A stretch of 64,000 bases of DNA from Octopus sinensis. Taxonomy: Eukaryota. The notes below the pieces were generated by a model. It did no database searches. It was given only the letters and a program-made list of their open reading frames with translations, and had not been told where the DNA came from. This document shows positions 143 to 63,392 of this stretch, piece by piece. Every line of letters begins with the position of its first letter. Position 1 is the stretch's first letter. Made by a program: the position numbers and the translations under genes. The stretch covers positions 62,868,001 through 62,932,000 of the forward strand of contig NC_043009.1 in NCBI RefSeq assembly GCF_006345805.1, in the 5' to 3' direction.

Positions 143-268
143 GTCAAAAAATATAAGAAAGGGAAAACGAAAGCAATCAATTCCCTTATAGGTGAAGTCA
201 TCAAGAAGACAGGGCAACGAGCTGACCCCGTTTTAGTAAATAATATTCTCAAGAAACTACTGGAGTAA
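143..268 (+). CDS. GATB: Last coding exon of glutamyl-tRNA(Gln) amidotransferase subunit B (GatB/PET112); rest of gene upstream of window
   Basis: Acceptor tttcttgcAG at 141-142. Phase-0 frame VKKYKKGKTKAINSLIGEVIKKTGQRADPVLVNNILKKLLE* (TAA 266-268) matches the GatB C-terminal motif pattern Y..GK..A...L.G.V.K.T..RADP..V. ATTAAA at 308-313. Confidence 0.85.
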   Translation, partial: VKKYKKGKTKAINSLIGEVIKKTGQRADPVLVNNILKKLLE

Positions 269-342
269 TTTAGAAGTTTCAAATGTGGTTTTTTATTTTA
301 TTATCTAATTAAACATTGATTTTTAATTATGTAGTTGTGTTG

Positions 343-630
343 TCATTATCGTCATCATCTTTTAACATCCACTTTCCATGCTGGTATGGGTTGGATGGTT
401 TGACTGAGAGCCAGCGAGCCAGAAGGCTGCACCAGTCTCCACTCTGATCTGGCAAAATTCCTACAGCTGGATGCCCTTCCTAATGCCAACCACTCTGAGA
501 GTGTAGTGGGTGCTTTTACATGCCACTGGCATGAGGGCTAGTCGGGCAGTACTAATATCGGCCACATTCAAATGGTGCCTTTTACGTGCCACTGGCACGG
601 GAGCCAGTCAGACCCTGGCGATGATCACGC
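343..630 (-). mobile_element. Family C repeat (RTE-type tail, (GAT)n end)
   Basis: Shared core ttaggaagggcatccagctgtag and tail ccaacccat(a/g)c(c/t)agcatggaaag.ggacgttaaa(gat)n; a related + strand copy follows at about 680-905. Confidence 0.8.
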
Positions 631-3600
631 CAGCATGGAAAATTGACATTAAAGGATGATATTTGTGTGAGGTGGTGTTCCCCTTGTCTTAATATCGTAT
701 AACTGTTGTAAACCAGTATCCTTCTCATACAAGCAGTGTTCTTGGTTTCCAAGCTTCTGTGAAAATGTCCAAAAACATCCCTTAATTGGAAACAGGTGAG
801 AGTTGGCAACATGAAAGACACCTGACCATAAAAAATTTGCCTCGACAAATTCCATCCAACCAATGCAAGCATGGAAAAGCAGGTGTTAAATGATGATTAT
901 GATTGATCACCAACGTGTTCAGTCAATTGGACACATTGAGAGCTTTCACAGTTCACTGCTGAATGTAAACCTTTGTAGGAGACAAATTTGGAAGAAAAAG
1001 AAAGAAAAAATGAAGTTGTTTTCTATATTTTCCAACTTACCTTTTGATGTGTAAAGAGATGTAGCAAGCAAGAAAATTTGAAGATTATTGTCTCACAAAC
1101 ATATATACTTTTTTTCTTTTTAAATCTGTCACCTCATTCAGTGTTAAAATTCCAAACAAAACCAGTTATGAGATCATTCTAGACAAGTTAATAATAAAAA
1201 TGAAGTAACTGCATACTTAGAAATGTGTTTTTATTTCAATATCTAAGTGTTGATCAATACAAAACAGAAATGATGGCGAGGAGGATGAAGAAAACTTATT
1301 TGAAAAACAAGAATTACTGACAATTATAAATGAACAAGGACAAGAAAATGATTTAACAAGAGGCTATTCGTCAGAAACTGCATGAGTTGAGCATCAGAGA
1401 AAGCTAAAGGATTTTTATTTTCAATTTTAAATTCTAGTCATTTAGTGAAGAAATCAAATGAAAACTGAAATAAGAATTTAAAAACATTTTTGCTCACAGT
1501 CCTCACAGTAAGGCTGTATTTCAAGTGGAATTTGTATTTAATTTCAAACTTCAAATATTTAATTTAAAATGGTGGTAATGAAATAAGCTGAAATCAATCA
1601 GACCGTTGTTTAATCATTTAGCTCACATACATACATAAACTTATTTCTAAGAGCATGTAATTACTTTCATGAATTTTAATTTACAAGTAAAATATTCAAT
1701 ATTCTCTAAAATTAACGAAACTCCTAATCATCATTAGAAATCTTCATTAGAAATGATTCTGGAAAAGACTAAAATATTTACCCAGTTTTACTCGAAGTAA
1801 AACGACGATTATGAAAAATGATTTTGCTTTTCTGTTACAATTAATTACTTACAGGTCTCTAATTTAAATCCAATGATATAAATCATTAATCACATAAACT
1901 AGTCAATGTTTTAAAATTATAATTAACTAAGAGTATTGCAACCACAATATTTTTGTTTTAAAACTGAGACTTATTTAAAGAAAGAATTCCATAAACATCA
2001 TTATTAGTCATAATTCATGAAAGGTAACGAGATAGTCTACTAAATTAGCAGCTGGTAAAGATATTTTACTCTCTGGAATGTAAAATCAACTAAATGCCAG
2101 ATATTGGATGTAGTTCTTCAGTCTTTAATAAGCTCCCATGCTGCAAGTTGGTAAGAAATATATAACAGATCAGTTAATTAGCCTTGAAGATGGTATAATG
2201 GTGGGAGTTAAAAAGTTCAAATAATCTTTTTATTGAAATCCTTTCACTATAAAGAAAATGGGAAGAAAGTTTTCTCAATGGTAGTAGTGCTCCAGCATGG
2301 CCACAGCCTTATGAGCTGGAACACATAAAGGAATAAATGTAAATTAAATGAAACAAGGTGGAAAGATCACAAAAAAAAAAAAGAAAAAAAGTGGTACAGA
2401 AGAGAAAAGAGCAACTAATAAATAAGTTGAAAGGTATAATTTCAAACTCAGACTCATTATCTAAATTTAATTTATTCAATAAAAAATATTCTTATATAGA
2501 AATGTGAGAAAATGTAATCTAAGTTGGGATTAAACTGCAATAGTTTTGTTTTCTTGTATTGTGAGAAAACATTCTAATTAACCACAAGGTCAGCAGACAA
2601 GGTTGTGGGTACTTTTCAGTAGCTTCATTAAATGGAAAGGAATTTGGAGAGAAGAAAGGGTGATAAATTTATGACAATAATGATGAGGGGATCCCAAAAA
2701 GAAAAAAAAGAAAAAGAAAGAGGGGAAGGCATCCTTCATGAGTGGAATATTATTGCTAATTATTTATTTATAAAGTACACAAAAAAATTTGGTTTTTATA
2801 TGTGTTTGTGTTTGTGTGTGTGTGTGTGTGTTTGTGAGACAGCATATGTGTGATTATACATATGCAACACAGGCAAAAAAAAATAACCCTAACACAATTA
2901 ATGCGTTTAAAACTCATTAATCGAAAAGAAAGAAAATGGTGAGGGGGGTGGGGGTGGCATGTAAATGAGTCTACATTCTCTTTGTCTCTCATACAGTTTC
3001 ATTGTATTCAGAAGTGTGAATGATAAAAAAATACTGCAAAATGTCTGATGGCAATGTGTAGAACACACAACAAACTGGCCAACACTGCTTTTGTTTTTTT
3101 TTTTATATTATTATGATCTTTATTTGTTTGGTTTGTTTGTTTGTTTGTTTTTAACAACTTTTCCAGGAATGAGATTGAGAAATGAAGTTCTGAAACAATA
3201 CTTAACTACACACATGTAGACACAGAAATACATGTTAGCCAAGTGAAAATATTTTCTTCTCTTCAAATTTGTTTTTTTTTTTTTTTTTTTTTGTAATTAT
3301 CTCTCCCTCCCCATCACCAACTCAAATTAACCTTCCTAAGTATTTTATTATTATTATTATTTTTTTTTTTTTTACAATTTTTAAGAAATTGTAATTTTTA
3401 TTTAACAGTTGGTGTGATCTGTTTATATTCATGCTCTGGTTTTAGTTAACTTTTAGGGATCACGCTTATCTGTACAAACCTATACAATAGAATCCCTTAA
3501 AAATGTAAAAGCCAGTTATACCACCAACATAAAACTCACACTAAAATTGTGATTGTATTATTCTTAACACAATTTCTGACCAATTTCTTCTCTATCATTG

Positions 3601-3925: not shown

Positions 3926-6900
3926 CTGTAAAATATAAAACAAACAGAAAACTTAGGTGATAACAAAGGAGATGCAGAGAGAGAGAAAAAAATTATGTAT
4001 AAGAAATTAATGAAAAAAAGGATACAAAAAAAAAAGCTATAATTTTTTTGGATCTTTTATTAAACATTGATCAATTGGTGGATTGCAACTAACTCATTCT
4101 TTAAATGCTTTTATATGCCCTTCTCTCCATATAAATTATCCTTATATAACAGTTTATAATACTGACCACTCATAACAGCATTTACAGTTGTTACTGATAA
4201 CAATTAGTTTGCAATTTCTAAACTACACCACAAAAAACAACTTGTTCCAAAGATCAATTGGAAAGCTTGAATATACTGAGAGAAAAGGGTTCAAAACTTT
4301 AGGATAATACAAACATTAAATATTTCTGATATTGGTGAGAATAATGCAGAAGATATTTGTATGAATAATGGGACATGAGCTTTCAGGAACAACACAAATA
4401 TTAGACATGTCAGGAGATTTTTTTTTTAATATACTTTTTCTTTATGTATTTATACAAAATTATAGTTAATATGAAAATAATTATGGCAGAAGATATTTCG
4501 AAGATCACTTCAATAGAAAATGTGCTTCAACTAAAGAAGAAACAAAAGCCTTTCTAAGACTGTAAAGGAATAATAACTCTAGTGCCATCATGATCTATAT
4601 TGAAATGCAAATTCATTGTAACATGTACTTCACTTAACCCTTTAGCATTCCTATTACTCTGCCAAAGGTAATGCTTATTTATTCATACTGCTTTGAATTG
4701 ATGAGGCTTCACCTTGAAACTTAAGAGATTTCCATGATGTAACCGTTATCTTTAGAATGACATTGTAAGGTAGGTGTGAAAGGCTGAATGTGACCAGTTT
4801 CAACATAAAACAGGTACAATATTCAGGTTGGATACGGCCAGTTTAAGTGCCAAAGGGGGTTGATTAAACACACTTTCATGATAATGTTTTGGTCATTTCA
4901 GGAGATATTCTCATGTTGCAGATATGTCACAAAACATCCCAAACACAACTTATTCACATGCAGTCCTTCATGGATGCATTGCAAAATAATTATGCAAACA
5001 ATAATCATGAATTGAATCGAACCTGTTTCAGCTCATGAGCTATGGCCATGCTGGGGCACCGCCATAAATTGTTTTCAAAAATACACCAAGAATGAATTTT
5101 CTCCATTATTTTTCTGTTTTTCCCCAGGAAGTAAATTTTTACTATCCCCATTGTAACTCACTGCGTTTCATATTACCATTTTTGTATGGAAAGGGGAATG
5201 GAAGCTTTGACCCTTTAGCATTCGGATTATTCTGTCAAAAGTAATGTTTGTTTATTCATGTTTATTTTGAATTTTACCATGCATTACCCCCATAACTAGA
5301 AGATTTTTATGATGTGGTTATTTATTTTTTAAAGTGACACTGTAAGGTAGGTTGGTGCAAGAGGCCAGATCCGACCAGTTTAATTACTAAAGGGCTAACA
5401 CTATTACACATTTACTGACATATTTAAAAAAAAAACAACATTTACACTGAATTAATATTTGTACAGATATTAAAACCAAAGAAATGTTAAAGTGCTTATC
5501 CAGATGTTCATCAGTAAATGTCTACAGAATAACAAATACATTTATAACAACAGACTGCCTCTATGTTTTAATTTTCTTTATACTCAAGATTTTAAGAGTG
5601 TTTTGTAAAATACACAGGTTTATTAAGGCTGATCTTGATTAAGTGAAATATCTCAAGATATTTTTACTTGTTTCAGTCATTTGACTGTGGCCATGCTGGA
5701 GCACCGCCTTTAATCGAGCTACTCGAACCCGGGACTTATTCTTTTGTAAGCCCAGTACTTATTCTATCGGTCTCTTTTGCTGAACTGCTAAGTAACAGGG
5801 ACATAAACACACCAGCATTGGTTGTCAAGCGATGTTGGGGGAACAAACAGACACACATACATACACACACACATAATATATATATATATATATACATATA
5901 TACAACGGGCTTCTTTCAGTTTCCATCCACCAAATCCATTCACAAGGCTTTGGTCGACCCGAGGCTATAGTAGAAGACACTTGCCCAAGGTGCCACGCAG
6001 TGGGACTGAACCCGGGACCATGTGGTTCGTAAGCAAGCTACTTACTACACAGCCATTCCTACGCCTATTGTTCATGTTTAGAAGTTTATTCATATGAATA
6101 CTTTGGTCCTTGACGAGTTGATACTAAATAGAGCTAAAAAGTTAATGAGGCAACTCCTGTGATTTGAAAATTGTTACAAAGGAACCTTCAGTATGAAAAG
6201 TGTAAATATATTTGCTTAGATACTAACATTTGATTGTACCGGACTAGTAATAAATACGACAATTTTACTCACAATTCTAAATTCAACAAAAGACAAGGAA
6301 GGAAGGACACACTGGTTTCTAATTTTGGCACAAGGCCAGCAAGTGCGTGGAGGGGGGGTAAGGCAATTATTACTGACCCCAGTGTTTAACAGGTACTTAT
6401 ATTATTAAGAGAGAGGGGATTTTAAAAACCAAAATAAATCAGTCCACATCAGAAAGACAGTGCTTACCATTTGGACATTTCAATATCATTCTTTGCCAAA
6501 ACAAATTCCCAACAAAAGACAATGGATTACTAGCCTCCAGTGGTTAGGGCAGCGAACTTGCGGTCATAGGATCGCGGTTTCGATTCCCAGACCGGGTGTT
6601 GTGAGTGTTTATTGAGTAAAAACACCTAAAGCTCCACAAGGCTACGGCAGGGGATGGTGGTGATCCCTGCTGTACTCTTTCACCACAACTTTCTCTCACT
6701 CTTACTTCCTGTTTCTGTTGTACCTGTATATCAAGGGGCCGGCCTTGTCACTCTCTGTGTCACGCTGAATAGCCCCGAGAACTACGTTAAGGGTACACGT
6801 GTCTGTGGAGTGCTCAGCCACTTACACGTTAATTTCACGAGCAGGCTGTTCCGTTGATTTGGATCAACCGGAACCCTCGTCGTCGGAACCGACGGAGTGC

Positions 6901-12900: not shown

Positions 12901-15900
12901 CCCAAATAAACACTGCTTGAGATAATACTCTGAACAACCATCACGCGGTTTCTCGATTTTTGTTTCTGTCTTAACATCTTTTCCATGCATTTGTTGCAGT
13001 GAAAATATTAATAAAATCTAATATTCCTTTCTACTCTGGACACAAGACCTGAAACTTTGGGGAATGGGGACAGTTGATTACATCAACCTCAGTGCCCAAC
13101 TGGTCCTTATTTTATCACTCCTAAAGGGATGAAAGGCAAAGGTGACCTCAGTGGAATTTGAACTCAGAACATAAAGACAGGCGAAATGCTGCTTAGCATT
13201 TTGCCCAGCGGGCTAATGATTCTGCCAGTTGGCCACCTTAATAAAGTCTAATGTTAAAAAATATTTTTAATGACATTAGACATTATAAGCACATTCCAGA
13301 ATATTTGCAGTTCCAGGCAATCTATATGTTATTGGTAAGAGTTGCTCAAGACACAATAAGATATATGGTTCAAGTCCTACCAAGGGGCCTGTTTCTCTCT
13401 CCTGTCTCAAAATCAAGCTTATAATGTGCAATAAGCGTTAAATGGAAATTTTATCAAGTAATTCATCATTTTATTACCTCATCTGCATATAAATATCGAG
13501 TTAGTGGCTAGTCTGGAACATTTAGAGAAACGACAAATTGAAAAGAGCTCTTTAAAAATATAAAAGAACCAATATTGAAAAGAACAAATAATAACTAGTT
13601 ATTGAAATGCTGTCAAAATCTGATAAATCCCACACACAAAAATGAAAAGCACAACAGAAATGTAGCTAAAAATAGTACCTTTTTGAACAGTTGTTCTATT
13701 CTGCCAAACTGATGTGAAAGCAACATTGCTAATTAATTAGTATCAAGACACAGAATTATATGGTGCCTTTTGAACACAAAAGCTTGAACAATCAATGAGC
13801 TTCATTTAAAATTAGGTGAAAAAATAATTATCACCAATACATAGATAATGTAAGCCAACATATCATACATAAGAACATAATTTCATAACAAGCCAATGAG
13901 AAAAGAAAAAAAATCTTTTAAGTTTCACAATAATAAATCAAACACCACTTACATTAATTTCAGCTTCTTCCACCTCCTTTTCCTTGCTTGCTGATTGGAT
14001 GGATGAAGTTGATTCAGCAGAAGTTTCTTCCTTCTCACTACCATTACTCACACTACTACTTGGTTTTTTACTACACCGGTAAACAAAAAACAAAAACAAA
14101 AGCATTTTGAAAATTCCATATAATTTACCATACTACTATTATTGTTATTACTATCACATTGTATCTTTCCACTAATGACTGCAGTTCATTGAAGAACAAA
14201 TTGCATTTGTGGAATGACAATCTCCAGACGCTGCACATATTAGAAAACTCAACAGACCCCCACTGTCAGCATATAATTGAGTACACCCATATTTTTGCAC
14301 AAATACATTAAACAAAACACACTGAGTTTTCACCATTCCCATATAACTGAGCACTCGTTACACAGTGTGTATACATACTCTCTTTTACTCCTTTACTTGT
14401 TTCAGTCATTTGACTGCGGCCATGCTGGAGCACCGCCTTTACTCGAGCAATTCGACCCTGGGACTTATTCTTTTGTAAGCCCAGTACTTATTCTATCGGT
14501 CTCTTTTGCCGAACCGCTACATAACGGGGACATAAACACACCAGCATCGGTTGTCAAGCAATGCTAGGGGGACAAACACAGACACACAAATGCATATATA
14601 TATATATATACGACGGGCTTCTTTCAGTTTCCGTCTACCAAATCCACTCACAAGGCTTAGGTCGGCCCGAGGCTATAGTAGAAGACACTTGCCCAAGGCG
14701 CCACGCAGTGTGACTGAACCCGGAACCATGTGGTTGGTAAACAAGCTACTTACCACACAGCCACTCCTGCGCCTATATGTAAACTATTTTAATTCTATTT
14801 TTCATGCTAACTTGAAAGAGGTGCTAACTGCATGGAGCTAAACCAATTATATGGCTTGAGAAAGGAGGACACCCAAAACAGGGCAAAATGGCGAGATGGT
14901 GTGAGGACGGTTGCTATGGCATTGAGGTAGATCCGGCCACCCCCGTTAATGGGAACAAAACCGGAATTTAAAATAATGGATGGATAGATGATACACACAC
15001 ACAACAAGCTTCTTTAACTTTTCTGCCTGCCAAATTCACTTACAAGATATTAGTCAGCCCAGGGTGACCAATGTTTTGCAAGACACTTGCCCAAGGTGCT
15101 GTGTAATGGGACTGAACCCAAAACCCCCATGGCTACAAAATAAGCTTCTTAACAACCACACAGCTCTGCCTGTGCACGTAATTGCATAATTCTTAATGTA
15201 ACAACACAGATGATGATGATGATGACAAAGTGTCCTACCGAGATTCTTTTTCATTTGCTGCTCGCTTCTTTGCTGGGATATTTTCATCAGGAGATCCTGC
15301 TGTTCTTTTTCTTGTACTACTTTCAGCTTTGTTATTTGTTGGTGCACTGGACGATCGGTTTTGTGCAGCTCGGCGTGTTGTGCCTTTTGTAGAGCCATTC
15401 AAAATCTGTTTTGTAGGTGATAAAACTTTTAAAGGAGAATTTTTAGAAGTTTGTCGCTTGGGCGAACGAAAGTCTGTTATTTTTGCCTGCATACCTGTCG
15501 CCTTTTTAGATTTGGCTACAGCTTTTGTTAATTTTATGGGGGTTTTGTTTTTCTTTCCAGCTTGAAGTGTAGCCTTTTTCACTAAAGCACCCTTTTTTTT
15601 GACAGCAGCAGATGTCTGTCTCACAGCTCGGCTAGTTCGAGCCTTCTGTTCACTAGTTGATTCCTCACTCTTCATTTTCTTGTCACTTTGTGAAGACGTA
15701 CTGAATGGTAGAGGAAGGAAAGCACATTATTGTAATTAAAAGAAATAAAACTCTTCAACACCCCACCAAAATCAACAGAGTAAGAACAATAAGATAATGA
15801 ACAATAGCTTACAAAACATGATGTGACATTATGCACATATACTCAACATGTTAACCACCACAGCCTGTTATTAGAGCTTACTGGTGGTGCCACATATTTC

Positions 15901-18900
15901 TAGTCACATTGCATACGGTTTAATTACAAGGAAACGTAATTATTTTTTGCAGTTTTACAATATTTCATAATTAAATTTTAATATTAAGCATCCATGTTAT
16001 CTAAATATTCCCAAAACATTGTCAAAGATACAGAATTAAAATATGTTCTCAAATTATGAAAATGTACCACCAGTGGTACTTGGTGGCAGTTATGACGTGC
16101 TTAAATTATTCATTTTTATATATTCATATGAAGTTTCCACCAATCCTTTTTTTTTTTTAAATTGCATCACTATGACAGAAAAACATACTAAAAACACAAA
16201 AAAGTTTGAACTTTTCCAACTGTACAAAAGATTTTATGAATTAATGCTGCTTGGAAGTAATTAATTGCATTTTTATGAATTAAAGATTGACGAGATAATG
16301 TGTTAGCAGCTGAAATACTGTTGCACTCTAATAAGGTAACTTGTGCAAGCAAGAAAAACATATCTCTGACAACCAAGTCTAAGATGTGTTATCCTCTTAT
16401 AAAATTTCATTTTATTAGTCTGGTTGCCATGGAAATTTCTGATACTAACTAATCAAGAATCATTATTACTAACTTTTGGGATGCAATTTCAGTGTATATA
16501 ATTGAATTTTTCCCTTGCTCATTGAGAAAAATCACCCACATGCTTAGACCATTTAGAAATTCACAGGTTTTCTAAGGACATTAAAAATACTATGAAAATG
16601 TTTTAATTTTCCTAAAGATGATATACGAAAATGAAAACAAGGAAGGAAATTTATGTAAACAAAATGGGACAATCAATACCATGCTCTAAATATCCACCAT
16701 GTTTTGAGAAATCATTCAGAAATTAAAGGTAAGACGGAAATTGTTTTTTTTTATTAAAAATATACTTTTCCCTGCAACTTTTCCCCATGGTGAAACACAC
16801 CACTGGCTAGGGAAGTATGCTAAAGAAGATCCGTAAAAAATTCTTTAAAATCAAACAAGCAATATATATATATATATATATATTAGATCAATACAACATG
16901 GCAAGTTTATAAGTTTTTTTACTATTAAAAGTTTAATTTGTCTGAAATAATTATCATTCAGTAATTGAGGTCAGGACTTAGAGAGTTTTAAGTATTGATA
17001 ATAAAGAATATCTACCTTTCTTTTGCTTCATTTTCTTTTTCCTTCTTTTTCTTTGATTCTCGGGGGCATGTAGGGTTAGGATTTACAACAGGTTTAGGGG
17101 AGGTCACAATAATTTCTGTTGTGGTGAACGGCACAGATGGTTTAGCAGTTACAGCTTTCTCAGATGTATTCATTAGAGTTGTCGGGGCAACTTTTTTCTA
17201 AGAAAGATAGGGGAAAAAAAATATTTTAAAACACCATGTCAGAGAAAACTGAAAAGCATATTTCCACATTGCAATAATATTTGGAAACTGAATAACTACC
17301 AGCAAAAGTAATTTATGGATCTTTCATCTTACCTTTCCTGTATCAAAGATGAAGTCCTTTGGGAGGTATAACTTGGTATTGCTATAACTCTGTAGGAAAG
17401 ACATAAAAGATGACTTTAGAATCAAATAGATTAAACACAAAACAAAATAAAAAGGAATCATAATTCTACTGGTGTTATTTTGGTTTATAATATACTGCTT
17501 ATACTGCAGTGTAAATAACGGACAGAATCAAGACTATTGAACAGGTTGAAAGACGCAACGAAAATTTTAGGAAAATAAAAATAAGAAATTTTACCATTGA
17601 GTGTGTTACATTATAAGGCACAAAAAGAAAATGAGTCTCTCCAGACACAACAGAATATGCTTATACATCATTCTAGGAAAAGTGGCAGAGTTCCTTTCAC
17701 ACACTGGACCTCATGGAGGCAAAGTGGTTGAGTTCCTTTAGAGTGTTGGGCCTCACAGAGGCAATGACCAAGACCTTTGGCATTATGTTGTGCTTGAGAA
17801 GAAAGCCCATTAAGCCAACCAAAATCAGTCGTGGCAGATACTGGTGTCGTGCCGGTGGCACATGAAAGCACTCATTACACTCTCAGAGTGGTTGGCATTA
17901 GGAAGGGCATCCAGCCATAAAAAAACCATGCCAAATCAGACTGGTCTGGCACAGCCTTCCAGCTTGCCAACCCTAGTCAAACCGTCCAACCCATGCCAGC
18001 ATGGACAATGGACATTAGACAGAAACTGCATGGAAGCCCATAATGTGTATGTGTGTGTTTGGCCCCCATCACCACTTGATATCCAGTGTTGGTTTATTTA
18101 TGGCCCTAGGAAAGAAACTTGTAGAATAAGCACCAGGCTTAAAAATAAGTATTGAGGTTGATCTATTCGACTAAAACCCTTCATGGCGGTGCCCAAGCAT
18201 GGCCACAGTCTAACAAGTGAAACAAGTAAAAGATTAAATATAAAATGAGTGCTTGCACACCATGAAGCTGTATTCAGCCTCCATCTTTTCCACAAGTCAG
18301 TGCTTGACCATACTTTTAAGATCCCATCACTTCTGCCAATGTGTGTGTGTGTGAGAGAGGGGTGTGGCGAAACAAGTATTTAGTGCCATAAAAATAAGGC
18401 AGTAAGACAAACTGTGAAGTTGTCTAAAGAGAGAGAGAAAAAAAAAAGTGGTTTATTTTAAGATTTCCAATAATATCATCATCATCATCGTCGTCGTTTA
18501 ACGTCCGCTTTCCATGCTAGCATGGGTTGGACAAAAATCAAGTTCCCATGCCGGGAATCGAACCCGGGCCGCCTGGGTAAATGCCAGGAATCCTAACCAC
18601 TAGACCACAATAGTGAGATAAAGTTAGACCGAAGAGCTCTTCAAAAAGAGAAGAGGTAACCAATCAAACAGTGCAACATCAATATAAGACTTACATGATC
18701 TGGTTTGGTGAACAGTTTTATTGGAAGAACAGGCTCCATGACCGTATCTTTCAGGACAACATTTGATACCTTCGTCATCATCAATCCCAAAGCAATGTCA
18801 CAAACAGCATATAATTTCTTATAAAATAAAAAAGGAAAAAAAAAAAAAATTTTTTTTTTTTACTTCAACCAAACAATTTTTTGTATAACATAACTCTCAT

Positions 18901-21171
18901 TAAGCTAAGTAATTCATAATGTTGAGAAAGTAGACTTAATAGTATTTCTACTAAGAACACACACAAACATATACACATACATAAATAAATAACTGAAAAT
19001 TAATATGGGGCATATCAAAAAAGTCACACTGTTACACATTAACCTATTTCTTTACTACTCACAAGGGGCTAAACACAGAGAGGAGACAAACGGACTAAGT
19101 CGAATATATCGACCCCAGTGCGTAACTGGTACTTATTTAATCGACCGCCGAAAGGATGAAAGACAAAGTCGACCTTGGCGGAATTTGAACTCAGAACGTA
19201 ACGGCAGACAGAATACTGCTAAGCATTTCGCCCAGCGTGCTAACATTTCTGCCAGCTCGACGCCTTACACATTAACCATTTAGCATTCAAACTATTCTGT
19301 CAAATGCAATGCTTATTTATTCATTGTTTTGAATCTACCATGAATTATCGAGTAGCTTCAAGTGTTTGATGATATGGCAGTTTATTTTTTAAATGACATA
19401 GTAGAGCAGGTGCAAGAGGCCAGATTTGGCCAATTCAAACATAAAGCGGGTAGAATATTTTGGCCAGATACAGCCATGCTCGAGGCTTAAAGAAGCAATC
19501 TGACTCAAGTTGCAGCACCTTCTATCTTCATAGGTGTAACTTACTATCTCTCAACTTATCTTCTCACATACACACACCTGAAGAGGACTTTCTTCATAAC
19601 AACAGTTTCGCATTTTAACTATAACATTCATCATCATCATCGTTTAACGTCTGCTTTCCATGCTAGCATGGGTTGGACGATTTGACTGAGGACTGGCGAA
19701 CCAGATGGCTGCGCCAGGCTCCAACCTGATCTGGCAGAGTTTCTACAGCTGGACGCCCTTCCTAATGCCAACCACTCCAAGAGTGTAGTGGGTGCTTTTA
19801 AAGTGCCACTGGCACGAGGGCCAGTCTGGCAGTACTGGCAACGGCCACGCTCGAAAATGGTGTTTTTTACATGCCACCGGCGCAAGAGTCAGTCCAGCAG
19901 CACTGGCAACGATCTCGCTTGAATGTTTTGTTCACGTGCCAGTGAGGCGAAGCTGACAACGATCACGCTCAATTGGTGCTCTTTACGTGCCAGACAGCTG
20001 CTCTGGCAGTGATCCTGCTTGGATGGAGCTGTTAGTGCTCCACTGGCACGGGTTCCAACATTACATAATATATTCACAATAATTAATCCTGTACAACATG
20101 CTTTTGCTACTGATCTCATATATTGATGTGAACTAGGAGAAAGCATGCACATTTGTTTTCCATTAGTCTACATAAGAGAGGCAATTCTGTACCTGCCCTA
20201 ATGTGAGATCATACCTTATTCATTTCATCATCCTCTGGGCCCTGTGCATCTTTAGTCTGTTTAATATCTTCAATCATCCGTCTGAAGAATGCATAGTTAT
20301 AGTCTTCACTCCGGCTCATCAAGGGATCCATCACAAACCAAAGACATCTAAAAATAAACAATGATACATTTTCAGAGACTTAAGATTAGAATTTAAAGAT
20401 TTTTATAGTTAAAAATCGAATTTTTAAAAATTCACAATTTATAATTAAAGAAAAAAAAAAAGTATATATAGATAAATGTTAATTATACTAACTCTTTAAT
20501 GATGTTCAAAGCTTGCATATGATCATGTGATTTGAGGTCAGGGTCGTGAGCCAACAGGTGAATTGTATAGGGCAGCATATAATCTGGGAGTAAGGAAAAG
20601 ATTTTAGCTGGAAAAAAGACGAAAAATTCTAAATAAGATGGAGTTTGTTTTTTTTATCTGTACATGATGCTTTTGTGTGTATGTGTTATCAAACATTCCT
20701 TTTTCTGTAATGAATAAATTCCCCAGAAGAGGAATAGGATTTTTTTTTAAATATATATTTCAGAGAAAAAACTCACAGAACCAGAAATATTAGTTTTTCT
20801 CCTGATTTTCTGGAATGCTTACAGAGAATAAGTCCAACTAATTGAGACTAATGAGAAGTGACCAGCAAAATGGTCAATTGTGCTAGTGTTTGACCTACTG
20901 CTTTTAATTAAACTTACAATGGATGAGTTTCGTCTGATTGAGTGATAAACAACGAGGGAGAGAACACATTTAGAATATATTCAAGATGACTTACAGTATG
21001 GTATGGATATGGAGTCATTTTGATCAGAAATGAAGGATACAGAAATGATCCGAGTAGTAATAACAGATGAAAGTGTAAGAGAATACAGTTAGGGAACCAA
21101 GAGATGGGAGTGTGTGATGTATGTTATATACGTCTATAAGGTAGTAGCTTTCTAACAGGTGGGGGGGGGGT

Positions 21172-21204
<33 letters not shown>

Positions 21205-24200
21205 GGAGTCAACATTACAAGCAAACTGTTGAAAATTTTAGATATGCAAGGAGCTGTAGTGGACACTTTGGGATAAAATTCTAAATTCTTATGTCCAATG
21301 AATACGTCCATTTCGTTAAATGTATTTTTAAAGTAGAGAATTAGTACCGATTCCACTTTAGCAGCAAATTGTTATTTGATACAAATTATCAAATTTTCAA
21401 AAAGGGAGAGGAAAAAAAAAAAGACAATTAAAAAAAATCATTAATTAGCTATGAAATAGAAAAAGTAAGCGTACTATTCATTCAATGCAATTAGTGAAGC
21501 TCTTTCCTTAAACAAATTAAAACTACATCAATGATAATAAACTAATAATTTTCTCAAATTTCAAATGGTTTTCTTCTAATTATATTTCTTACTTTAATGT
21601 GAAATGCTTAGAGTCAAAAAGCAAAGCTTGGTTATGTAACTTACAGCCTGCTGTTGCATGCTGTTTGAGATATTCTCTCCTTTTGCTAATATTTGCATAA
21701 AGGAACTGCTTCACCTGAGCTCGTCGTTCCTTGACAGGGTCATTAGCTGCCAAAGAGAAGATACTCATATATTCAAGAGGTAAGCGAAGACTTAGCAGTC
21801 CTTTGTTCAATTTCATAGCGAACCGGAGACGGACTTGATAACAGCTATCCTGCAAAAGACAAAAAGAATACTATGTAAAAAAAAAAAAATAAAAAAAAAC
21901 TAATACAAAATATAGAAAATACTTTATTTCCAACTAACATTTGTAAATGTAAGATCTGCAGAACATTTTCAAGAACTGACGTTTAATAAATCATAAAATA
22001 AAAACAACTTACATTAATAAGCAATGCTAATGCCTGGAACTGTTCTCTGGTAATAAGCTCTGCAAAGCAGGGTTCTTCTGCCAACTTTAACATACAACAG
22101 CCTGCTTGTAGCCGGAGACGAGCTAATTCAGGTTTGCTTTAAATAAAATAATTTAACAAGAATAAGTGAATCCATGCATGTAATCCTCCACCACCTACCC
22201 TCCAACATCCAAGAAGGAATTACATTATCAGGAGATCACTCTCAAGTTATATTGAATTGCACAACATGAAATAGATTTCCACATAAATACATTGGTATTT
22301 CTTTTGTTTTCTACTAATCCTATAAAACTATTATTATCATTGTTTCACATACATTAACCACGTTTGGCATGGATAGGACACGTCACCACAGTTGGAATAA
22401 CCACACTTTTGAGGGCCACTCCCCATCTAGATGGGTCAAGGAATCTTATCTCGCACAGGTTTCATTTTGGCTTGGTTTTTATGGTTGGATGCCTTTCATA
22501 ACATCAACCATTTTACAGGGTACACAAGGTATGGTTTTGTGACAAAGGGTCCATAGATGTAACCATGGCCTCAAAGAGACTTCACAATTCCCACATCTCT
22601 GCTCACACACCAGCCTTTTAGAGAGAGAACCAAGAATGATAGTGATGTGTTATCAAGGTGGAGGCAGTAACTTAATATCTTGAGGAACTGTTTCTCCACT
22701 GCTGATTTTCCAACATGTCTCAGAGGCCATACAAAGAGCATGGGTGCTGCTCTTCCTTCTGTGCCCAACCCAGCGAAAAACAAAATACAGTGAAGAACCA
22801 GTCAAGCTAAAAATGGTTGAGCAAGAGTCCAATAAATGAATCGTCCAAACCAACAAGTCATCAGGTGAGAAAGAATGAAGGATTAGATCTGATTTGAGTG
22901 GGAGAGAATTTAAAAGGCACACCAGTGATACACAATATTGGATTTAAGTGTTGGATCTAAGTATGGTGGTGGGCATGTGAGAGAGAGCCCCTTATTCCTA
23001 CATTACAATAATGGATGACCTGTTGAGGCAAGTGAAAATCAAAATTAAAATCGATCCACATCAATAGAATTTGTAGTTTGCGGTACCAGTGCCGGTGGCA
23101 CATAAGAGAACCATCCGAACGTGGCCGTAGCCAGCACCACATCGACTGGCCTCCGTGCTGGTGGCATGTAAAAAACACCATCCGATCGTGGCCGTTTGCT
23201 AGCCTCGTCTGGCACCTGTGTCGGTGGCACATAAAAAGCACCCACTACACTCACGGAGTGGTTGGCATTAGGAAGGGCATCCAGCTGTAGAAACACTGCC
23301 AGATCTGACTGGCCTGGTGCAGCCTTCTGGCTTCCCAGACCCCAGTTGAACCGGCCAACCCATGCTAGTATGGAAAGCGGACGTTAAACGATGATGATGA
23401 TGATCTCACTAACCCCCCCCATTTTTTTTTTTTTTTGATAATGCAGAAAGTCAAGCAATAAAGAAATATACTACAGTCATAAGAATATAAGAGTTTCGTT
23501 GCCATTTTTAGTAGGTTTTCATTTATCTGTTACTCAGTTTCAAAACATTTTAATCTCAACAGTAAAGATGACAAGTGCAATAATGCAGCAAATGAAGAAA
23601 TACTTACTTTATCTTTCCTCTCTCCATAAGATCACCCTCATGGATTATCACAGTATAAAGTAGCCGTAAAGTAGATGTTGCTGAATTTCCTGCATTATTC
23701 CGTAAGCCCAATAACCAGCGAACCAACATTTTCATAGCCAAAACCTGTCAACATTATATTCAAAATATTACTCTTTCTTCAAGACAGATGTTTAATACAA
23801 ACAAGATTATTATCACAGGTGACCAATTATGGTTACAAAGACCATGTTTAACACTTTTCGTTATCTTATTTCTGTTGAGATGCTCTGCGTCTCTTTCAAT
23901 TAATTTTAAATATAACAAAGAATTTAGTAAAATAACTTAGTTATCATTAAGCTAGTGTTATAAATTGTGACTAAGGTTTATTGGAAGATTTTAATTCAAA
24001 ACTTTTGAAAACGAGAAATTTGTACTACAGGGTCAGAGGCAGTTTCAAGTGGGTTGGTATTGAAATGGTTAAGAATGGTTTCTCTATTATATATTTTAAC
24101 CCATTTGTTACCATATTTCTGTTGAGATTCTGTGTGTCCCTTTCAATTAATTTTAAATATAACAAAGAATTTAGTAAAATAACTTAGTTATCATTAAGCT

Positions 24201-27200: not shown

Positions 27201-30200
27201 AATTGGAACCAGTGTTCACAAATATTTGAAGAGTTAAATCAGCTGAAATTAAAAAAGATGCAGAATGTAAGAGGGGTCATTGGAATTTGTTACACTGAGG
27301 TTCTACCCCTCCTGTTCCCATCCTATAGCTAATTTGAATTACATCAACCATCCATCCATACAAATCATCATTATCGTTTAACGTCCGCTTTTCATGCTGG
27401 CATGGGTTGGACGGTTTGACTGAGGACTGGTGAGCCAGAGGCTGCACCAGGCCCAATGACCTGGCAAAGCTTCTACAGCTGGATGCCCTTCCTAACGCCA
27501 ACTGCTCCAAGAGTGTAGTGGGTGCTTTTACGTGACACCGGCACAAAGGCCAGTCAGGCAGCACTTGCTAAATGTCTGCTTTAAAAAAAAAAAAAAAGAA
27601 GTTTCTGACCAGAAGATAAGTCCACTACAAGTGACCCATTTACAGCTGAGTGGTCTGGAGCAACATGAAATGAGTGTTTTGCCCAGGAACACAATGCACA
27701 GCCAGCCTGGGAACTGAACTGATGATCTCACAATCATGAGTGTAACGCACTTAACCACTAGGCTATGTACCTTCACTTATGTGTGTGTTGAAAAGTTGGC
27801 AAAGGAAGGCCAGCCAGCTATAGAAAATCTAACTCAACAAATTCCATCTAAGCCATACTGGCATGGCAAAGTGGATGTCAAATGATGAAAGCAACCCTTT
27901 AGTTTGGTCAACCTTACTAAGAGTACAAAAAGAAAAAAAAATCCTTTACATAAGGAACACAACACTATTCTCATAAAAATCTTTATATATAAAAGTGAAG
28001 TTGTGTGTCTATCTCCTACGATTTAGATTCCTAACTACTCCCACATTTTGCGGTGCAGTTTAACCAAAACCGGGTATCTTATAGTCGTGATTCATATCGA
28101 GCCCTTCTGGGTATTAGCGTACGTCTACGATGAGTCTACGATTTTAAAAATAATTTACCATTATTTTTTTCCATTTTAATGCACTTTTTCGCTATTATAT
28201 AAGGGAAGTAACTCTCTAAAAATGTCTACGATGCGTCAACGATTTAAAAAAAAATTTACCATCATTTTTTCCCCAATTTTAATGCATTTCTTTGCTATTT
28301 TTTGGCTATAACTCTCTAAAAATGCTTATATAGTTATTTCCCTTACAAATCCGAGCAACGCCGGGCGATACTGCTAGTAATTAACAAAATAGAAACTGGG
28401 AAGAATTTGATAACAATCATGAATTTAAAACAATCAAAGATAATCCTTAATTAATTACTCACATATAACCTCATCTTCATTTTTCAGGAATGTCAATAAA
28501 TCTTCAAAAACACTCTCTCTGTTAAAACAGGGTGGGAAGACACTGGACAAAGCCTGTAGGAACAAGGAAAGAAAAAAAACCACACATTGAACGGAAATAA
28601 TTTGAAATTCATTCTGATAATGTAAACAATATATTAAGTTCATAATGAGAAAATAATAAAAAAATAAGTAGTTTAAGGTTAAATACTAACCAGAAGAAGT
28701 TTCAAACCTTTCTCACCAGCTGCGAGAACTCCATCATCAACATATATCAAGCCACTAATTACATCACAGTTGTACTTCACCAAGGCACTGATAGCATCTG
28801 CATCAATCATGACTGGGGCTATACGCTCTAATAAAGACTTCACAGCTGTGTAGAAAGGAGTTTGCTGGCCAGGATTCCCAACCTTTCGCAATATTTCTTT
28901 CTGTAATGGGAATTTATCAAAGAATTTACCATTGAGTATGAAAACAGTTTTTCATAAAAATTTTTTTAAATAATAAAAAAAAAAAAAAAAAAAAAAAAAC
29001 ATGTGGGAAAAATTTATTTATTTTTATTCAATGAGGTTTATCTTTTATCTGTTACTCGTTCAGTCATTAGACTGTGGCCATGCTGGGGCACCACCTTGAA
29101 GAATTTTAGTCAAACAAATCAACCCCAGTACTTAGTTTTGTTTTCAAACCTGCTACTTATTCTATTGATCTTTTTTTGCCGAACTGCTAGGTTACAGGGA
29201 TGTAAACACACAAACACCGGTTGTCAAGTTGTGGGGGTACAAACACATGATGGGCTTCTTTCAGTTTCCATTTACCTAATCCATTCACAAGGCTTTGGTC
29301 GGCCTAGATTTGTAGTGGAAGACAAATGTATGCCCAAAGTGCCATACAGTGGGACTGAACCCAAAACCATGAGGTTGGAGAGCAAACACCTTACCACACA
29401 GCCACACCTGCGCTTATGAAACAAACAAATATTCCTCAACCCTATTGAAATACATTACTTTTAGTTCAATTAATTTTGAAAATAACAAAGAATTTTAGTA
29501 AAATAGTCATTATTTAATGTCAGTTTTCCATGCGAGCAGGGGTTGGGCAGCTGGATGGGAACTGATAAGACCAGGGACTGCACCAAGTGCCTTGGTCTGT
29601 TTTGGCATGGATTCTATGGTTGGATGCCCTTCCAAACACCGACCACATCGCAGAGTGTACTGGGTGTTTTTATGTGGCATTAGCACCATAACTTAGTCAT
29701 TAATAAAACTGGTACCTGCAGCGTAAATCAATATGGAATTTTGATGGAAAGTTTTAATTTAAAACAGGGACTTTGTATTACAGGACCAAGGGCAGTTTCA
29801 GGCAGATTAGTATCAAAAGGATTAAAGTGAAGAAAACCAAAGAAAATAATTACAACAGCATCTTCAGCCTTGCGGCATGTGCAGTCTGAGCTGACCAGTG
29901 CTTTTAGACAATGGCGAACACGTTTATCTTCTCTCAAAATATGATTGAATTTTTTAAGATGTTCCTGAGCTTTATTAGGTTCAGGTAACTGTCCTGAAAA
30001 TACAAATTGCAACATTGGATTTAATAAATATTCAAAACAAAAAGAGCAAGAATATTTCTTTGAAATTTATTTCATTTATGAACCGGAGAAGGGAGTTGAT
30101 TTTTCAAATCAGCATGAATTGCATACACACACACACACATATTTATAGGTAATTTCAAGACTTGCAAACATCAAAAGGTTAATCAGAGAAAAATACTAGC

Positions 30201-33200: not shown

Positions 33201-36200
33201 GTGCTAGTTAGGAACAATATATTTTATATAGTGAAAGTAGGCCAAAGCAGACACTTGCTCTATTTTAAAAGTAAAGCTTTATAAATATTTTCACTGGCAC
33301 ACAAAACTGTTCTGTATTTTTCACTTCACCTGATCCAACTGTTTCTATAAAAACTTTTATATTGCAAATTTAAATAACTTTCAACAAAGAATAATAAAGA
33401 AACACGAATGTCAATCTTACTTCAGAGCATGTTCGTCTAAAGATGTATACAAGTTGTGAAGCCGTTTCATTCTTTCCGATGTCGGCAGCGTATAGGGTAC
33501 AAGACAAGTGTTAAAAATGCGTTCAACAAGTAACCTAAAGGAAAAAAAAAAAAGAAATTTAGAGAAAACATATATTCACCCAAATGCAGCTTATTTAGAA
33601 TAAAATAAAGACTCAATATATTCATTGAGAAATAGGAAATCATCATCATCATCGTTTAGCGTCTGCTTTCCATGCTGGCATGGGTTGGATGGCGCAACTG
33701 GGGTCTGGGAAGCCAGAAGGCTGCACCAGGCCCAGTCTGATCCGGCAATGTTTCTACAGCTGGATGCCCTTCCTAACGCCAACCACTCCATCTGTTATAT
33801 AAAAGTCTTCATCCACAAATACACTGAGTGAGCAATAAATCTTAAAAAGTGTGAATATTTTTAGAATGGCTATAAAGAACAGCCTTTATGAAAACACTAT
33901 ATAGGGTAAAAGTTTGATAGTGATATCATTTATCGACGATTTTTAGAACTGCCTATAGAAAACAAGTATTGGATAATTCTTACACCTCTTCAAAGGAGAT
34001 CAACAAAGGATTCCTAACAGCCACAGCACTTCCAAGAACTGTACTGCAAGGAAACCCACAACTTCTACCCAATCCTAACTTAACTTCTAAAAAATTCCAC
34101 ATTGTGAATAGTAACTCATCCAAAACAGAATTAATACTCTAAGTAAATAATGAAATACTCATATAAATACATACTCATGTATTTTTCAAACAAATGCAGA
34201 CATGTCGGCATACAATCATTATATCTAATAGAAAATATATTTCATATGAATACGTTACATTTAGAAGAAGGAATAATGAGACACAAGACTTTATAATCTT
34301 GCAGTGAAATAGAAAGTATTTCACACACTGGTCATTACCATTATTTAATGTCCACTTTTCCATGCTTTGTATGGGCCAGATTGTAGGTGCAGGCATGGCT
34401 GTGTAGTTAAAAAGTTCACTATCCAACCATGAGTTCAGTCCCACCACATGGCACCTTGGGAGAGTGTCTTCTCTTACATCCCAAGGCTGACCCAAACCTT
34501 TTGAGTAGATTTCATAGAGAGAGTGTGTGTGTGTGTGTACATGTACACGTGTGTCTTCTTGACATTGCATGATAGTTGTAAATAAGTGCCAGTCATTCAT
34601 TTCCAATATTCCATGAAAACATGTCTGCCCATGAGGGGATCCTACCTGGAATCAGGTAGGGCTGGGAGGCAATAGGAAGGGCAACCAGCAACAGAAAATC
34701 TGCCTCAATTAACTCCATGTGACCCATGCCAACATAGAAAAGTGGACAATGATATTATTTAAATTCACAATTTCTTTACCAGATGAATTAGACCCCAATC
34801 TGGCCATATATTTACCTGTCTTCAGGGCTGTGCTGATAATAAGCGTGAAAAACTTTATCCTTAACCCATGCAAGACGCTTTGCAATTGCCGTGTTGTCAG
34901 GATCTTGGTTAATATAAGTCTTGTACAGGTGAGCTAGTCCAAGTAATGCTTCTCGCCGTATCTTAAACTAAGAAAATCAGATTTCATCACATTAAAAATT
35001 GAACGAAATATTTCTTACTTCATTTATAAACTTTCAAAATAATAATTATAAACAAGAAAAAATAAGTAAAATGCTTAAGCATGGCTGGAACTAGTAAAAG
35101 AGTAAGTATATAAAACAAAGGGGAAGATTATGTGATAAAGAAGTTTTTATCACAACCACGTGGTTGAGTTCAATTCCATGAGGCAGCTTGGGTAAGTGTC
35201 TCACTGTGGCATGGATTGGTCAAATAAATTCAGTTAAATATGGTAGGTAAAAAATGTGCATGAGAGTGTGTGCACAGCTTTTGTTTATGTATGTCAGCAA
35301 AGTGTAATAAACACCTTCAAGAAAACTTAGGGGGTGGGGTGAGGGAGGAGATACTAAATGAAGTCTCCTGAGATATATCAAACTGGACCTTAGAAACTTG
35401 CAATCAACATCACTGCTCCAAGTTGCAATAAAGATAAGTCTTCTGATTTCAATTTGTGTCAATGATAATGTATAGTAGCCTTAGTCAAAGTCATCTACTT
35501 GCTTTCAACAACCAAATTGGAAAATATCCTAAGTTGGTAATTGGTATTAGCAACAGTAAAACGCTTAAACCTTATTGATGATCCGGACCAGTACAAATGT
35601 GGTATCATTTATGAAAAAATTTAATACTAAATATCAAGTAAATTTTGTATTTGAAATTAAAATGTGGATTACCTTCTTGTCTAGAGTTCGTTCTTTAATG
35701 AAAGCCAACAGTTCATCAGTTATCATTTTGAAATCTTTCTTTGCAGCATTCAAAACTGCTGATACAACCTCCATTCGAACAGTCTCTTCGGGATCATGCT
35801 GACGAATTTTCAGTTGTTCTAAAATGATAAAGTACATGTATTTCTTGAGTTTTTTTTTTTTTTAAATCATAATTTTTTTTGCATGTATTTTTAACATGTG
35901 GATAAAGAATTTGTCTTGAAACTTTGAAATGATTTAAGATGATTGCAAATTTTAACAAATCTTGTTGCAAAGGTGGTCATCTTTGACAATATTAGATGCA
36001 GAGACTCACCTTCAATCATTCACTTCTTTATCATCATCATCGTTTAACGTCCGTTTTCCGCGCTAGCACGGGTTGGACGGTTCGACCGGGGTCTGGAAAG
36101 CCAGGGGCTGCACCAGGCTCCAGTCTGATCTGGCAGTGTTTCTACAGCTGGATGCCCTTCCTAACGCCAACCACTCCACGAGTGTAGTGGGTGCTTTTTA

Positions 36201-45021: not shown

Positions 45022-45378
45022 TATCTTTTACTTGTTTCAGCCAGACTGAGGTCATATTGGGGGCATTGCCTTAAAGAATTCTACTCAAACAAATTGACCC
45101 CAACACTTTTTATTTTCATAAAGCCTGGTACTTATTCTATTTTGCTAAACTACTAAGAGGGATGTAAACACAGCAACACTGACCGTCAAGTGGTGACACA
45201 AACACACACATATACACATACAACAAGCTTCTTTCAATTTCCGTGTAACAAATCCATTCACAAGCCTTTCACTGGCCTGAGGCTATGGGAGAAGACACTT
45301 GCCCAAGGTGCCATGCAGTGGGACTGAACTTGGGACAATGTGATTGGAAAGCAAACTTCTTACCACACAGCCATGCCT
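45022..45378 (-). mobile_element. SINE family B, diverged
   Basis: Head, core and tail motifs; inverted relative to the copy at about 46805-47150 (+). Confidence 0.75.
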
Positions 45379-45825
45379 GCTTTTCTAGAAAAACACTTTT
45401 TATTTTCACACTTGACATGGCAATCACCCATTTCCACAGATTACTAAATAACTGCGGCAGCTATTCCAGTTTCTTGTTATCCTTTCACTCCTGCGCAAAT
45501 TTTTTGCATTACATATTTTATCCTCTTTTTAAACGGGCTTTTACACACCTGCAAAATTTCTGCACAACAAATTTTATTTTCATTTCCCTTTCAAAGAACT
45601 TTCCAGAGTAAAAAACTACTAAAGCATTATCGGAGTAAAACCGACAAGTTATATTTATTTTTTAATACAGAGGATAAACAGAACCAATATCTTTAAATAA
45701 CTATTCAAATCTATCATGAGGAAAGACAATCATTTCTCACTTCACATTTAAACATTTGGTATTTTAAGACAAAATTTTTGGTTTATAATACCAAAACTGC
45801 CCTAAATAACCGTATCCATATACAG

Positions 45826-62719: not shown

Positions 62720-63392
62720 CTTTGGAAGAAAGCAAACGAATGAATACAAGAACAAGGATGGAAAAAAAAAAAAAATTGGAGAAATGGTACACAATTACAA
62801 ATACAAACAACAGGTGTCTTTCAACTAAAGATAAATTAAGCTGGCATGTGTGAGTGTAAAAATTAAACACAAAGGTAAAAAGAACAGAGTGTATTAGGTT
62901 TACGCTCAGGAAAAATAGAAGGAAAAGCCTATTGTTTTGAGCATACACAGAAAGAAAAGCCAGGGAGGGGGGTTAGAGAGAGAAAAGAACAAATGTTGAT
63001 TAGATGGTCACTGAACAAAATACTCAGATGATGAGGCAGAAAAACAAGACAAAAATCATTTCATATTTAAGAGTATATAAGAATCAGTTTAGTATGTACC
63101 ATAAATGCAACAGAAAGTTTGCACTAGGAGAAACAAGAATTCTTGCAAAGATGTTTTACTCTTTTGATATCAATCTAACACTATCCCTGCTGTCAATGGT
63201 ACAAACTTTCTGATTTGAAGTGATCTAAATTAAAAGCTTCCATCAAAAATTCCATGGTGATTTCCGTTCCAAGCACTAGCTCCAACTTATTTCCCTAAAT
63301 TCTTCATTATTTTCAAATCAATTGAGACAAAAACAGTGCATTTCAACAGAAACAGGATAACAAAATGGTTAAGTCTTTCAAAAAGATTAACT

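Follow-up and report, generated by a model that had tools for sequence, protein, structure and literature searches.

In a 64,000-nucleotide (nt) stretch of the Octopus sinensis genome (contig NC_043009.1, positions 62,868,001 to 62,932,000 of the forward strand; hereafter the window), the minus strand of positions 18468-18614 carries a transfer RNA (tRNA)-Glu sequence that keeps the 3' end of an unprocessed RNA polymerase III (Pol III) transcript and is joined at that end to the tail of an RTE-type long interspersed nuclear element (LINE). Both the tRNA and the tail are truncated at their 5' ends, the run of Ts that closes the tRNA part abuts the tail directly, and neither half has decayed appreciably. 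We consider it probable that this unit is a single chimeric retrocopy, produced when an RTE-type LINE reverse transcriptase (RT) jumped from its own template onto a precursor of tRNA-Glu.

Read directly from the sequence, the minus strand runs ...AACTTTATCTC ACTATTG / TGGTCTAGTGGTTAGGATTCCTGGCATTTACCCAGGCGGCCCGGGTTCGATTCCCGGCATGGGAA / CTTGA / TTTTT / GTCCAACCCATGCTAGCATGGAAAGCGGACGTTAAAC(GAC)2(GAT)5 / ATTATTG GAAATC..., and each element named in an earlier interpretation of the letters alone (the sequence-only reading), namely tRNA-Glu at 18607-18543, CTTGA, TTTTT and a tail of about 58 nt, was found in its place with all coordinates correct to the base. The tRNA-Glu(UUC)-type body (18543-18607) spans position 8 to the discriminator A without the 5' acceptor strand, and contains an A box (18607-18597), an anticodon loop reading CATTTAC (18583-18577) and a B box (18564-18554). 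Right behind the discriminator, and without a CCA, come the 3' trailer CTTGA (18538-18542) and a run of five Ts (T5; 18533-18537), which we read as the Pol III terminator and hence as the U-tract at the 3' end of the primary transcript. The RTE-type tail (18532-18475; 58 nt in all) comprises a segment predicted to form the hairpin GUCC-AAC-CCAUG-CUAG-CAUGG-AAAGC-GGAC (18503-18532), which is coding in the LINE, and a remainder made up of GTTAAAC and the microsatellite (GAC)2(GAT)5 (18475-18502). At the junction, T5 is followed by GTCC with neither CCA nor filler bases between the end of the tRNA transcript and the tail (40-nt junction GGCATGGGAACTTGATTTTTGTCCAACCCATGCTAGC, core GGGAACTTGATTTTTGTCCAACCC). 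The join is ambiguous by 1 nt, as the last T of T5 may come from the tail donor through CpG decay (CGT to TGT); in the tail alignment, other copies show CCGTCC, CCATCC or CTGTCC at this position.

The tRNA half was recognized by the Rfam tRNA model (RF00005; 18543-18614(-)) with a score of 39.2 bits against a gathering score of 29 and an E-value of 9.4e-5 for the whole window, in which the same model gave no second tRNA-like match even at E <= 10. ARAGORN called the interval 18543-18614 as tRNA-Lys(TTT) because the loop reads CATTTAC. For reference we used ARAGORN-called tRNA-Glu(TTC) genes from two marine contigs (L007:222-293 and L008:44-116), which were retrieved through sense-frame open reading frames (ORFs). 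Alignment revealed that positions 8-65 of the octopus sequence are the same as in these genes save for T33A and C36T, that the A and B boxes are identical in all bases, and that outside the anticodon loop the tRNA half agrees with canonical tRNA-Glu at 51/51 positions. The identity proposed in the sequence-only reading was thus borne out, as was its claim of intact promoter boxes, and a tRNA-Lys identity, or a tie to tRNA-Lys-type heads, was rejected, since the body fits Glu and the tRNA-Lys genes of the same contigs are very different. The genuine tRNA-Glu genes also carry comparable trailers of 2-5 nt ahead of their T-runs (GTTCATTTT, CGTTTTT), so that the pre-tRNA-type 3' end previously described for the unit, with trailer and T5 and without CCA, has the layout of a real tRNA-Glu gene. 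At the other end, the 5' acceptor strand reads ACTATTG rather than the expected TCCCATG and 3/7 acceptor-stem pairs are non-standard; the tRNA is therefore truncated at position 6/7, with its first six or seven bases missing. Within 5 kb upstream, a displaced 5' acceptor strand (TCCCAT), such as a tRNA split by an insertion might leave, was found only as an unrelated site at 21109. The sequence does not have the properties of a functional tRNA-Glu gene, as its acceptor stem is not intact, its anticodon is TTT, and it has A33 in place of U33, a residue that is near-universal in tRNA.

The two differences from tRNA-Glu change the loop from CTTTCAC to CATTTAC, and both of the sole changes across positions 8-65 therefore fall within the 7-nt anticodon loop. 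The chance that two random changes among 58 positions would both hit the loop is ~1%. While the CATTTAC loop noted in the sequence-only reading is present, its attribution to drift is thus open to question: because both changes cluster in the loop while the rest is undecayed, we doubt simple post-insertion drift and regard a variant source gene or RNA as at least as likely as decay after insertion. T33A and C36T may derive from a variant parent gene, an error of reverse transcription or a later mutation.

Comparison of the region with the window by blastn revealed 22 further sites that match the tail (E down to 3e-18), each match starting at the junction, while the tRNA part and the flanks occur only once. 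Seventeen of the 22 belong to one abundant family resembling a short interspersed nuclear element (SINE), here called family C, whose body reads ...GTTAGGAAGGGCATCCAGCTGTAGAAAC...CTGGTGCAGCC... and which has a variable internal repeat at its 5' end. Neither Rfam nor ARAGORN detected a tRNA-like head in family C. A family C ORF matches only annotated proteins of O. vulgaris and O. bimaculoides, which marks the window as octopod; in O. vulgaris, antisense ORFs of the family are annotated as hypothetical proteins. Family C occurs at a density of ~1 per 4 kb (for example at 63369-63442(-), 19628-19678(-), 23355-23404(+) and 36030-36078(-)), and its 5' region holds a variable number of internal repeats of ~45-50 nt (GGTGGCACGTAAAAAGCACCA...). 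No clear motif was seen in the 3' flanks of the 22 tail copies.

The LINE to which the tail belongs was identified by scanning metagenome contigs for the tail core, which matched four contigs. One of these (Ga0164306_10019889, here L004) contains an apparently intact 1090-amino-acid ORF at 163-3435(-) with an RVT_1 domain (2e-31) and an Exo_endo_phos domain whose E-value of 1.3e-4 narrowly misses the Pfam cutoff; between the RT and the C-terminus there is also a weak match of PHD-finger type (PF00628, E = 1e-4, below cutoff). The last codons of this ORF are the tail itself, with the stop codon inside the tail and (TGAT)n following, and the L004 tail and the octopus tail core agree at all but 2/39 positions. 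The combination of a single ORF, an APE-type endonuclease with an RT, almost no 3' untranslated region and a terminal microsatellite, taken with the literature on octopus RTE elements (PMC9115989, PMC13282606), supports assignment of the LINE carrying the tail to the RTE type. Within the window, tblastn with the L004 ORF detected a decayed RTE-like LINE 3' portion on the plus strand (53958-55074), in which an RT remnant (53958-54512; E = 2.4e-10) precedes a degenerate version of this tail, placed by alignment at 55030-55074. The RTE-type tail of the sequence-only reading is therefore supported, both by this remnant and by the endonuclease and RT of the single-ORF LINE on L004 that ends in the same tail. 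The tails at 855(+), 49572(-) and 31012(-) also trail short remnants that resemble the C-terminal coding region of the LINE (DRxxW-like).

In the 17 family C copies and the LINE contigs, homology runs upstream past the tail as ...AACCGT/CCAACCC, while in the chimera it ends at TTTTT/GTCC; the tail in the chimera is therefore a 5'-truncated piece of a longer template. The idea that the junction marks the edge of a discrete tail module was rejected in part, as the LINE and family C sequences remain homologous for another 6-8 nt upstream (AACCGT). The junction coincides with the base of the predicted hairpin, GUCC...CCAUG-CUAG-CAUGG...GGAC, which has a minimum free energy of -10.2 kcal/mol and whose pairing is found in 86% of cells across 27 copies, as opposed to 26-48% with slid partners. 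Covariation for the hairpin is weak, with 45/500 shuffles reaching the observed score, and it is confounded by CpG decay and by the coding constraint of the LINE, the G-C to A-U changes sitting at CpG sites. A tail-only unit of the form TCCAACCCATGCTAGCATGGAAAACGGACGCTAAACGAC(GAT)n (47715-47767, minus strand; start TCCAACCC) was identified by blastn with 380 nt of unique DNA upstream, and it starts within 1 nt of the position at which the tail of the chimera starts. No RT similarity was found upstream of 47767 by tblastn with the L004 ORF. Together, the tail-only unit and the chimera hint that this RT does leave or switch template at the base of the hairpin. The sequence AATTC is a possible flanking repeat of the tail-only unit and overlaps its tail start.

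Both halves of the unit look equally young, judging from the following comparisons. The 39-nt tail core differs by one to two mismatches from L004 and from those family C copies that have decayed least, and by none from the consensus of the youngest copies. All CpG sites scored in this core are intact, and direct reading revealed that the tRNA half keeps its four CpGs and that the (GAC) units resemble GAT units in an undecayed CpG form.

The unit is inserted in sense orientation in an intron of a PDS5 homologue, ~80 nt past the 5' splice site. If the template-jump reading is correct, the enzyme would have nicked the intron DNA and begun target-primed reverse transcription on an RNA bearing its cognate 3' module (hairpin plus (GAU)n), which may have been a family C SINE or LINE RNA, or else a piece of such an RNA that ended at the base of the hairpin. 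After only ~58 nt, it would have moved to the 3' terminus of a tRNA-Glu(UUC)-type Pol III transcript that was still nascent and had kept its trailer and U-tract, prior to RNase Z cleavage and CCA addition. Synthesis of cDNA, or 5' joining, would then have stopped at tRNA position 6-7, giving a target duplication of 5-7 bp with TG microhomology. This model predicts a pre-insertion site reading ...TTTATCTCA[C/T]TATTGGAAATCTT... with one copy of the repeat, and a parent tRNA-Glu gene with the acceptor TCCCATG/CATGGGA and the trailer CTTGATTTTT. Non-long-terminal-repeat RTs have been described as jumping end-to-end from the 5' end of one RNA to the 3' end of another, as in the R2 work of Bibillo and Eickbush. 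Because RTE is a stringent clade that needs its own tail, a tRNA transcript would be copied by such an enzyme only as a chimera. The RTE template jump put forward in the sequence-only reading is indeed the most economical route to a Pol III 3' terminus lying directly against a 5'-truncated tail; that there was one event, and that it involved a jump with the templates in this order, is what we infer as probable.

The flanking sequences are compatible with this reading. TATTG (CAATA on the plus strand) occurs at both ends (18612-18608 and 18472-18468) as the exact core of the 7-nt repeats ACTATTG (18608-18614) and ATTATTG (18468-18474), which agree at 6/7 positions and abut the tRNA start and the last GAT exactly. 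The last one or two bases (TG) of the 5' repeat coincide with tRNA positions 6-7, so that the 5' junction shows microhomology. The tail by itself is not bracketed by a flanking repeat, and no long duplications were seen around other copies of the tail in the window. The repeats and their overlap with the tRNA, which the sequence-only reading had taken as a possible 5-bp CAATA target-site duplication (TSD) with microhomology, are present, and they are weakly compatible with a TSD of one insertion.

Several observations weigh against a one-off retrocopy from a single event. A shared 5-mer or longer was found in 9% of junction-window pairs resampled from this sequence (P ~0.09), and it is this frequency that keeps the status of the flanking repeat as a TSD weak. 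The two loop changes are non-randomly placed and could be diagnostic changes of a master copy, pointing to a SINE family instead of a one-off copy of a pre-tRNA. The orthologous PDS5 locus of a distant cephalopod (L005, on a 564-kb ENA contig), recovered with PDS5 exon peptides, bears on both sides. Seven of its exon blocks keep the order of those in the window, with identities of 73-85%, and its 20.5 kb contain neither tRNA, tail nor family C copy, an absence of both halves that agrees with a single event; its intron, however, is too diverged to align, so that the suggested comparison with an orthologous intron shows lineage-specific absence and not an empty CAATA site.

The strongest competitor, which we regard as unlikely though deserving of weight, is that the unit is one 5'-truncated copy of a simple SINE of low or moderate copy number, with a tRNA-Glu head and a minimal RTE tail, whose master arose earlier by the same jump and was expressed by terminator read-through or by co-transcription by RNA polymerase II. 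The standard layout of a SINE is a head joined to a LINE tail, 5' truncation is normal for SINE copies, and the unit has intact A and B boxes; moreover, the clustering in the loop of the sole two differences from tRNA-Glu resembles the characteristic substitutions that SINEs share with a source gene (SINEBase, PMC3531059), and ~900 recently active, mostly unclassified SINE families have been reported in O. vulgaris (PMC13282606). Set against this, Pol III transcripts should terminate at the internal T5 that immediately precedes the tail, ahead of the part that the RT needs, a natural-looking trailer has been kept, and a second copy was found neither in the window nor in 61 kb of O. vulgaris sequence with 13 other tails. 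A different way to reach the same arrangement would be two independent events, with a tRNA-Glu gene or pseudogene in the intron and a tail-only RTE or SINE insertion right after its T-run, or the reverse order. Tail-only insertions do exist (47767-47715, in unique DNA), the TSD around the composite is weak, and a U6atac/Alu pair without a TSD has been attributed to two events (Doucet et al. 2015, PMC4476161). Such a history would nevertheless need a gap of zero bases at a type of site that 125 kb of sequence contain just once, and we estimate the chance of a separate tail landing at the exact end of the tRNA terminator at ~1e-5 to 1e-3. It is also opposed by the missing flanking repeat around the tail, by the equally undecayed state of the two halves, and by the loss of the 5' acceptor strand, as a tRNA without this strand is no resident gene and would itself need a retro-origin, which a stringent RTE should not support without a tail; we therefore judge two events to be very improbable.

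A join made at the DNA level without a jump, whether by capture of two cDNA or DNA fragments during double-strand-break repair or by non-homologous recombination or gene conversion involving a tRNA-Glu locus and a repeat, appears to us about equally improbable. End-joining, too, typically goes with short or absent TSDs and with microhomology such as the TG at the 5' junction, and for PittSINE, rearrangement and gene conversion have been named as other possible origins (Suh et al. 2017, PMC5729268). The two fragments, however, lie in the same orientation, join exactly at the 3' terminus (U-tract) of an RNA without filler DNA, and end in a target-priming microsatellite, the geometry that one would expect of target-primed reverse transcription with a jump.

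The template-jump reading places the unit beside systems that are already known, including cases in which RTE enzymes and Pol III transcripts were involved; what the locus adds is an invertebrate example with a cleanly kept pre-tRNA 3' end. The stringent clades RTE and L2 form U6 pseudogenes only as template-switch chimeras, and the old proposal that such jumps transferred the tails of stringent LINEs to tRNAs has been restated in the same work (Doucet et al. 2015, PMC4476161). As in the U6/LINE chimeras (Buzdin 2002/2003; Garcia-Perez 2007; Doucet 2015), the unit has a Pol III RNA joined in sense orientation at its own U-ended 3' terminus to a 5'-truncated LINE 3' end with the priming repeat, and the whole would have been inserted as one unit. 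It differs from them in that the acceptor is a pre-tRNA in a cephalopod rather than U6, the LINE part is minimal (58 nt, hairpin plus microsatellite) and the small RNA is 5'-truncated; in L1 chimeras the TSDs are mostly longer than the 5-7 bp found here. In passerine birds, PittSINE has been proposed to have arisen from TguSINE1 by an event of the same kind, in which a stringent LINE RT (CR1) was modelled to jump from a tail-bearing SINE RNA onto a tRNA (Suh et al. 2017, PMC5729268); its product, a tRNA head with a tail of hairpin and microsatellite bracketed by a TSD, has the same layout as the unit with its possible TSD. As an amplified family, PittSINE has a founding chimera that is deduced, whereas here a single copy is observed, and it retains the trailer and T5 terminator that PittSINE-type heads need not read through. 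The primate tRNA/LINE-1 chimeras (bioRxiv 10.1101/2025.02.02.635956) also combine a tRNA with a LINE 3' end, in their case in one event with TSDs, but most of them are antisense tRNA halves (nt 1-37) ascribed to twin priming, in contrast to the near-complete sense tRNA with a pre-tRNA 3' end described here.

Among established SINEs, those mobilized by RTE (family C, Bov-tA and AfroSINE-type; Malik and Eickbush 1998; Kojima 2018, PMC5786205) share with the unit an RTE 3' module of ~40-50 nt, and similarity between RTE 3' ends is often confined to ~40 bp across very distant taxa (Kojima 2018, PMC5786205). Unlike the unit, these SINEs exist in many copies, have a body that separates the head from the tail, and lack a terminator ahead of the tail. 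The simple SINEs ID, vic-1 and DAS-I (SINEBase, PMC3531059) resemble the unit in their tRNA-derived heads and essentially absent bodies, although L1 mobilizes them, they have A-tails, and their definition rests on high copy number and diagnostic substitutions.

A run of four to five Ts ends Pol III transcription. The unit has a head with an internal Pol III promoter and a LINE-derived tail, as a SINE does, and it also has a terminator between the two, the T5 at 18537-18533 having been confirmed at the place where the sequence-only reading saw a block to amplification. Despite the A and B boxes that are kept, its own T5 would end Pol III transcripts ahead of the tail, and because of this the copy as it stands is, on its sequence features, a dead-end pseudogene and not a working SINE. 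To call it a SINE-birth intermediate is speculative and describes a resemblance.

The sampled sequence offers some bearing on copy number. The window contains no second copy of the composite, as compared with 17 copies of family C, and three O. vulgaris loci (61 kb in all) hold 13 tails, 11 of them family C, and nothing in them is tRNA-like or matches the tRNA half or the flanks. Assuming the octopus genome size of ~2.8 Gb, these data very roughly exclude only a family of more than ~1e5 copies. The exact pattern of T-arm plus tail (GGTTCGATTCCCGG N10-30 TCCAACCCATGC) had 0 matches in metagenome, prokaryote-genome and viral collections, which hold almost no cephalopod DNA. A four-frame junction peptide compared with 5.8 billion proteins and 1.84 billion representatives returned only ordinary tRNA-Glu genes in translation and nothing spanning the junction, and no exact record was found for four window ORFs beside the unit; these protein-database negatives carry no weight for the junction, as only annotated Octopus proteins are covered. 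Full-text literature search for the tail sequence yielded only chance primer matches, and no sequence library accompanies the O. vulgaris repeat paper in its supplement.

The origin of SINEs by transfer of a stringent LINE 3' end to a tRNA has mostly been deduced from amplified families, and its unamplified product, in which the pre-tRNA trailer and terminator persist, is rarely seen. If the junction is unique genome-wide, the locus would be a textbook-quality invertebrate case of an RTE jump onto a nascent Pol III transcript, while several different heads joined at the same tail position would show that the enzyme can reach the 3' ends of RNAs where these are being transcribed, and would bear on the SINE richness of octopus. 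We can also envisage, as a rather doubtful extension, that the unit and the tail-only unit at 47767 reflect a habit of octopus RTE, which would copy just the hairpin and microsatellite before jumping onto nascent Pol III 3' ends, with the present locus a founder-stage or very young, low-copy tRNA-Glu SINE that has not lost its terminator. Were such a habit real, it would make the first step of SINE birth directly observable and provide a mechanistic reason for the hundreds of SINE families in octopus.

The host gene was recognized from concatenated minus-strand exon peptides, which match human PDS5B (5hdt_A) at 2.5e-67. Compared with protein databases, the exon peptides returned only relatives at 77-79% identity, and no Octopus PDS5 protein was among them. 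The homologue of this cohesin regulator takes up much of the window (15242-39485, minus strand), with exons at ~39.2, 29.8, 21.7, 20.5, 20.3, 18.7, 17.4, 17.1 and 15.2-15.7 kb, of which the exon at 15.2-15.7 kb is C-terminal and rich in Lys and Ser. The exon next to the unit (18695-18819, minus strand) ends in ...KLFTKPDH followed by GTAAGT and is conserved in L005. As one intronic copy, the unit has no evident effect on the host PDS5 gene.

Elsewhere in the window, ORFs containing ...KLLTTQP... recur on the plus strand at 5668-6097, 14277-14841, 29003-29419 and 45285-45611, and on their opposite strand a sequence (GGTTCCGGGTTCAGTCCC) resembles a tRNA-type B box. By this resemblance, they probably mark another tRNA-derived SINE family that is left uncalled by the tRNA finders.

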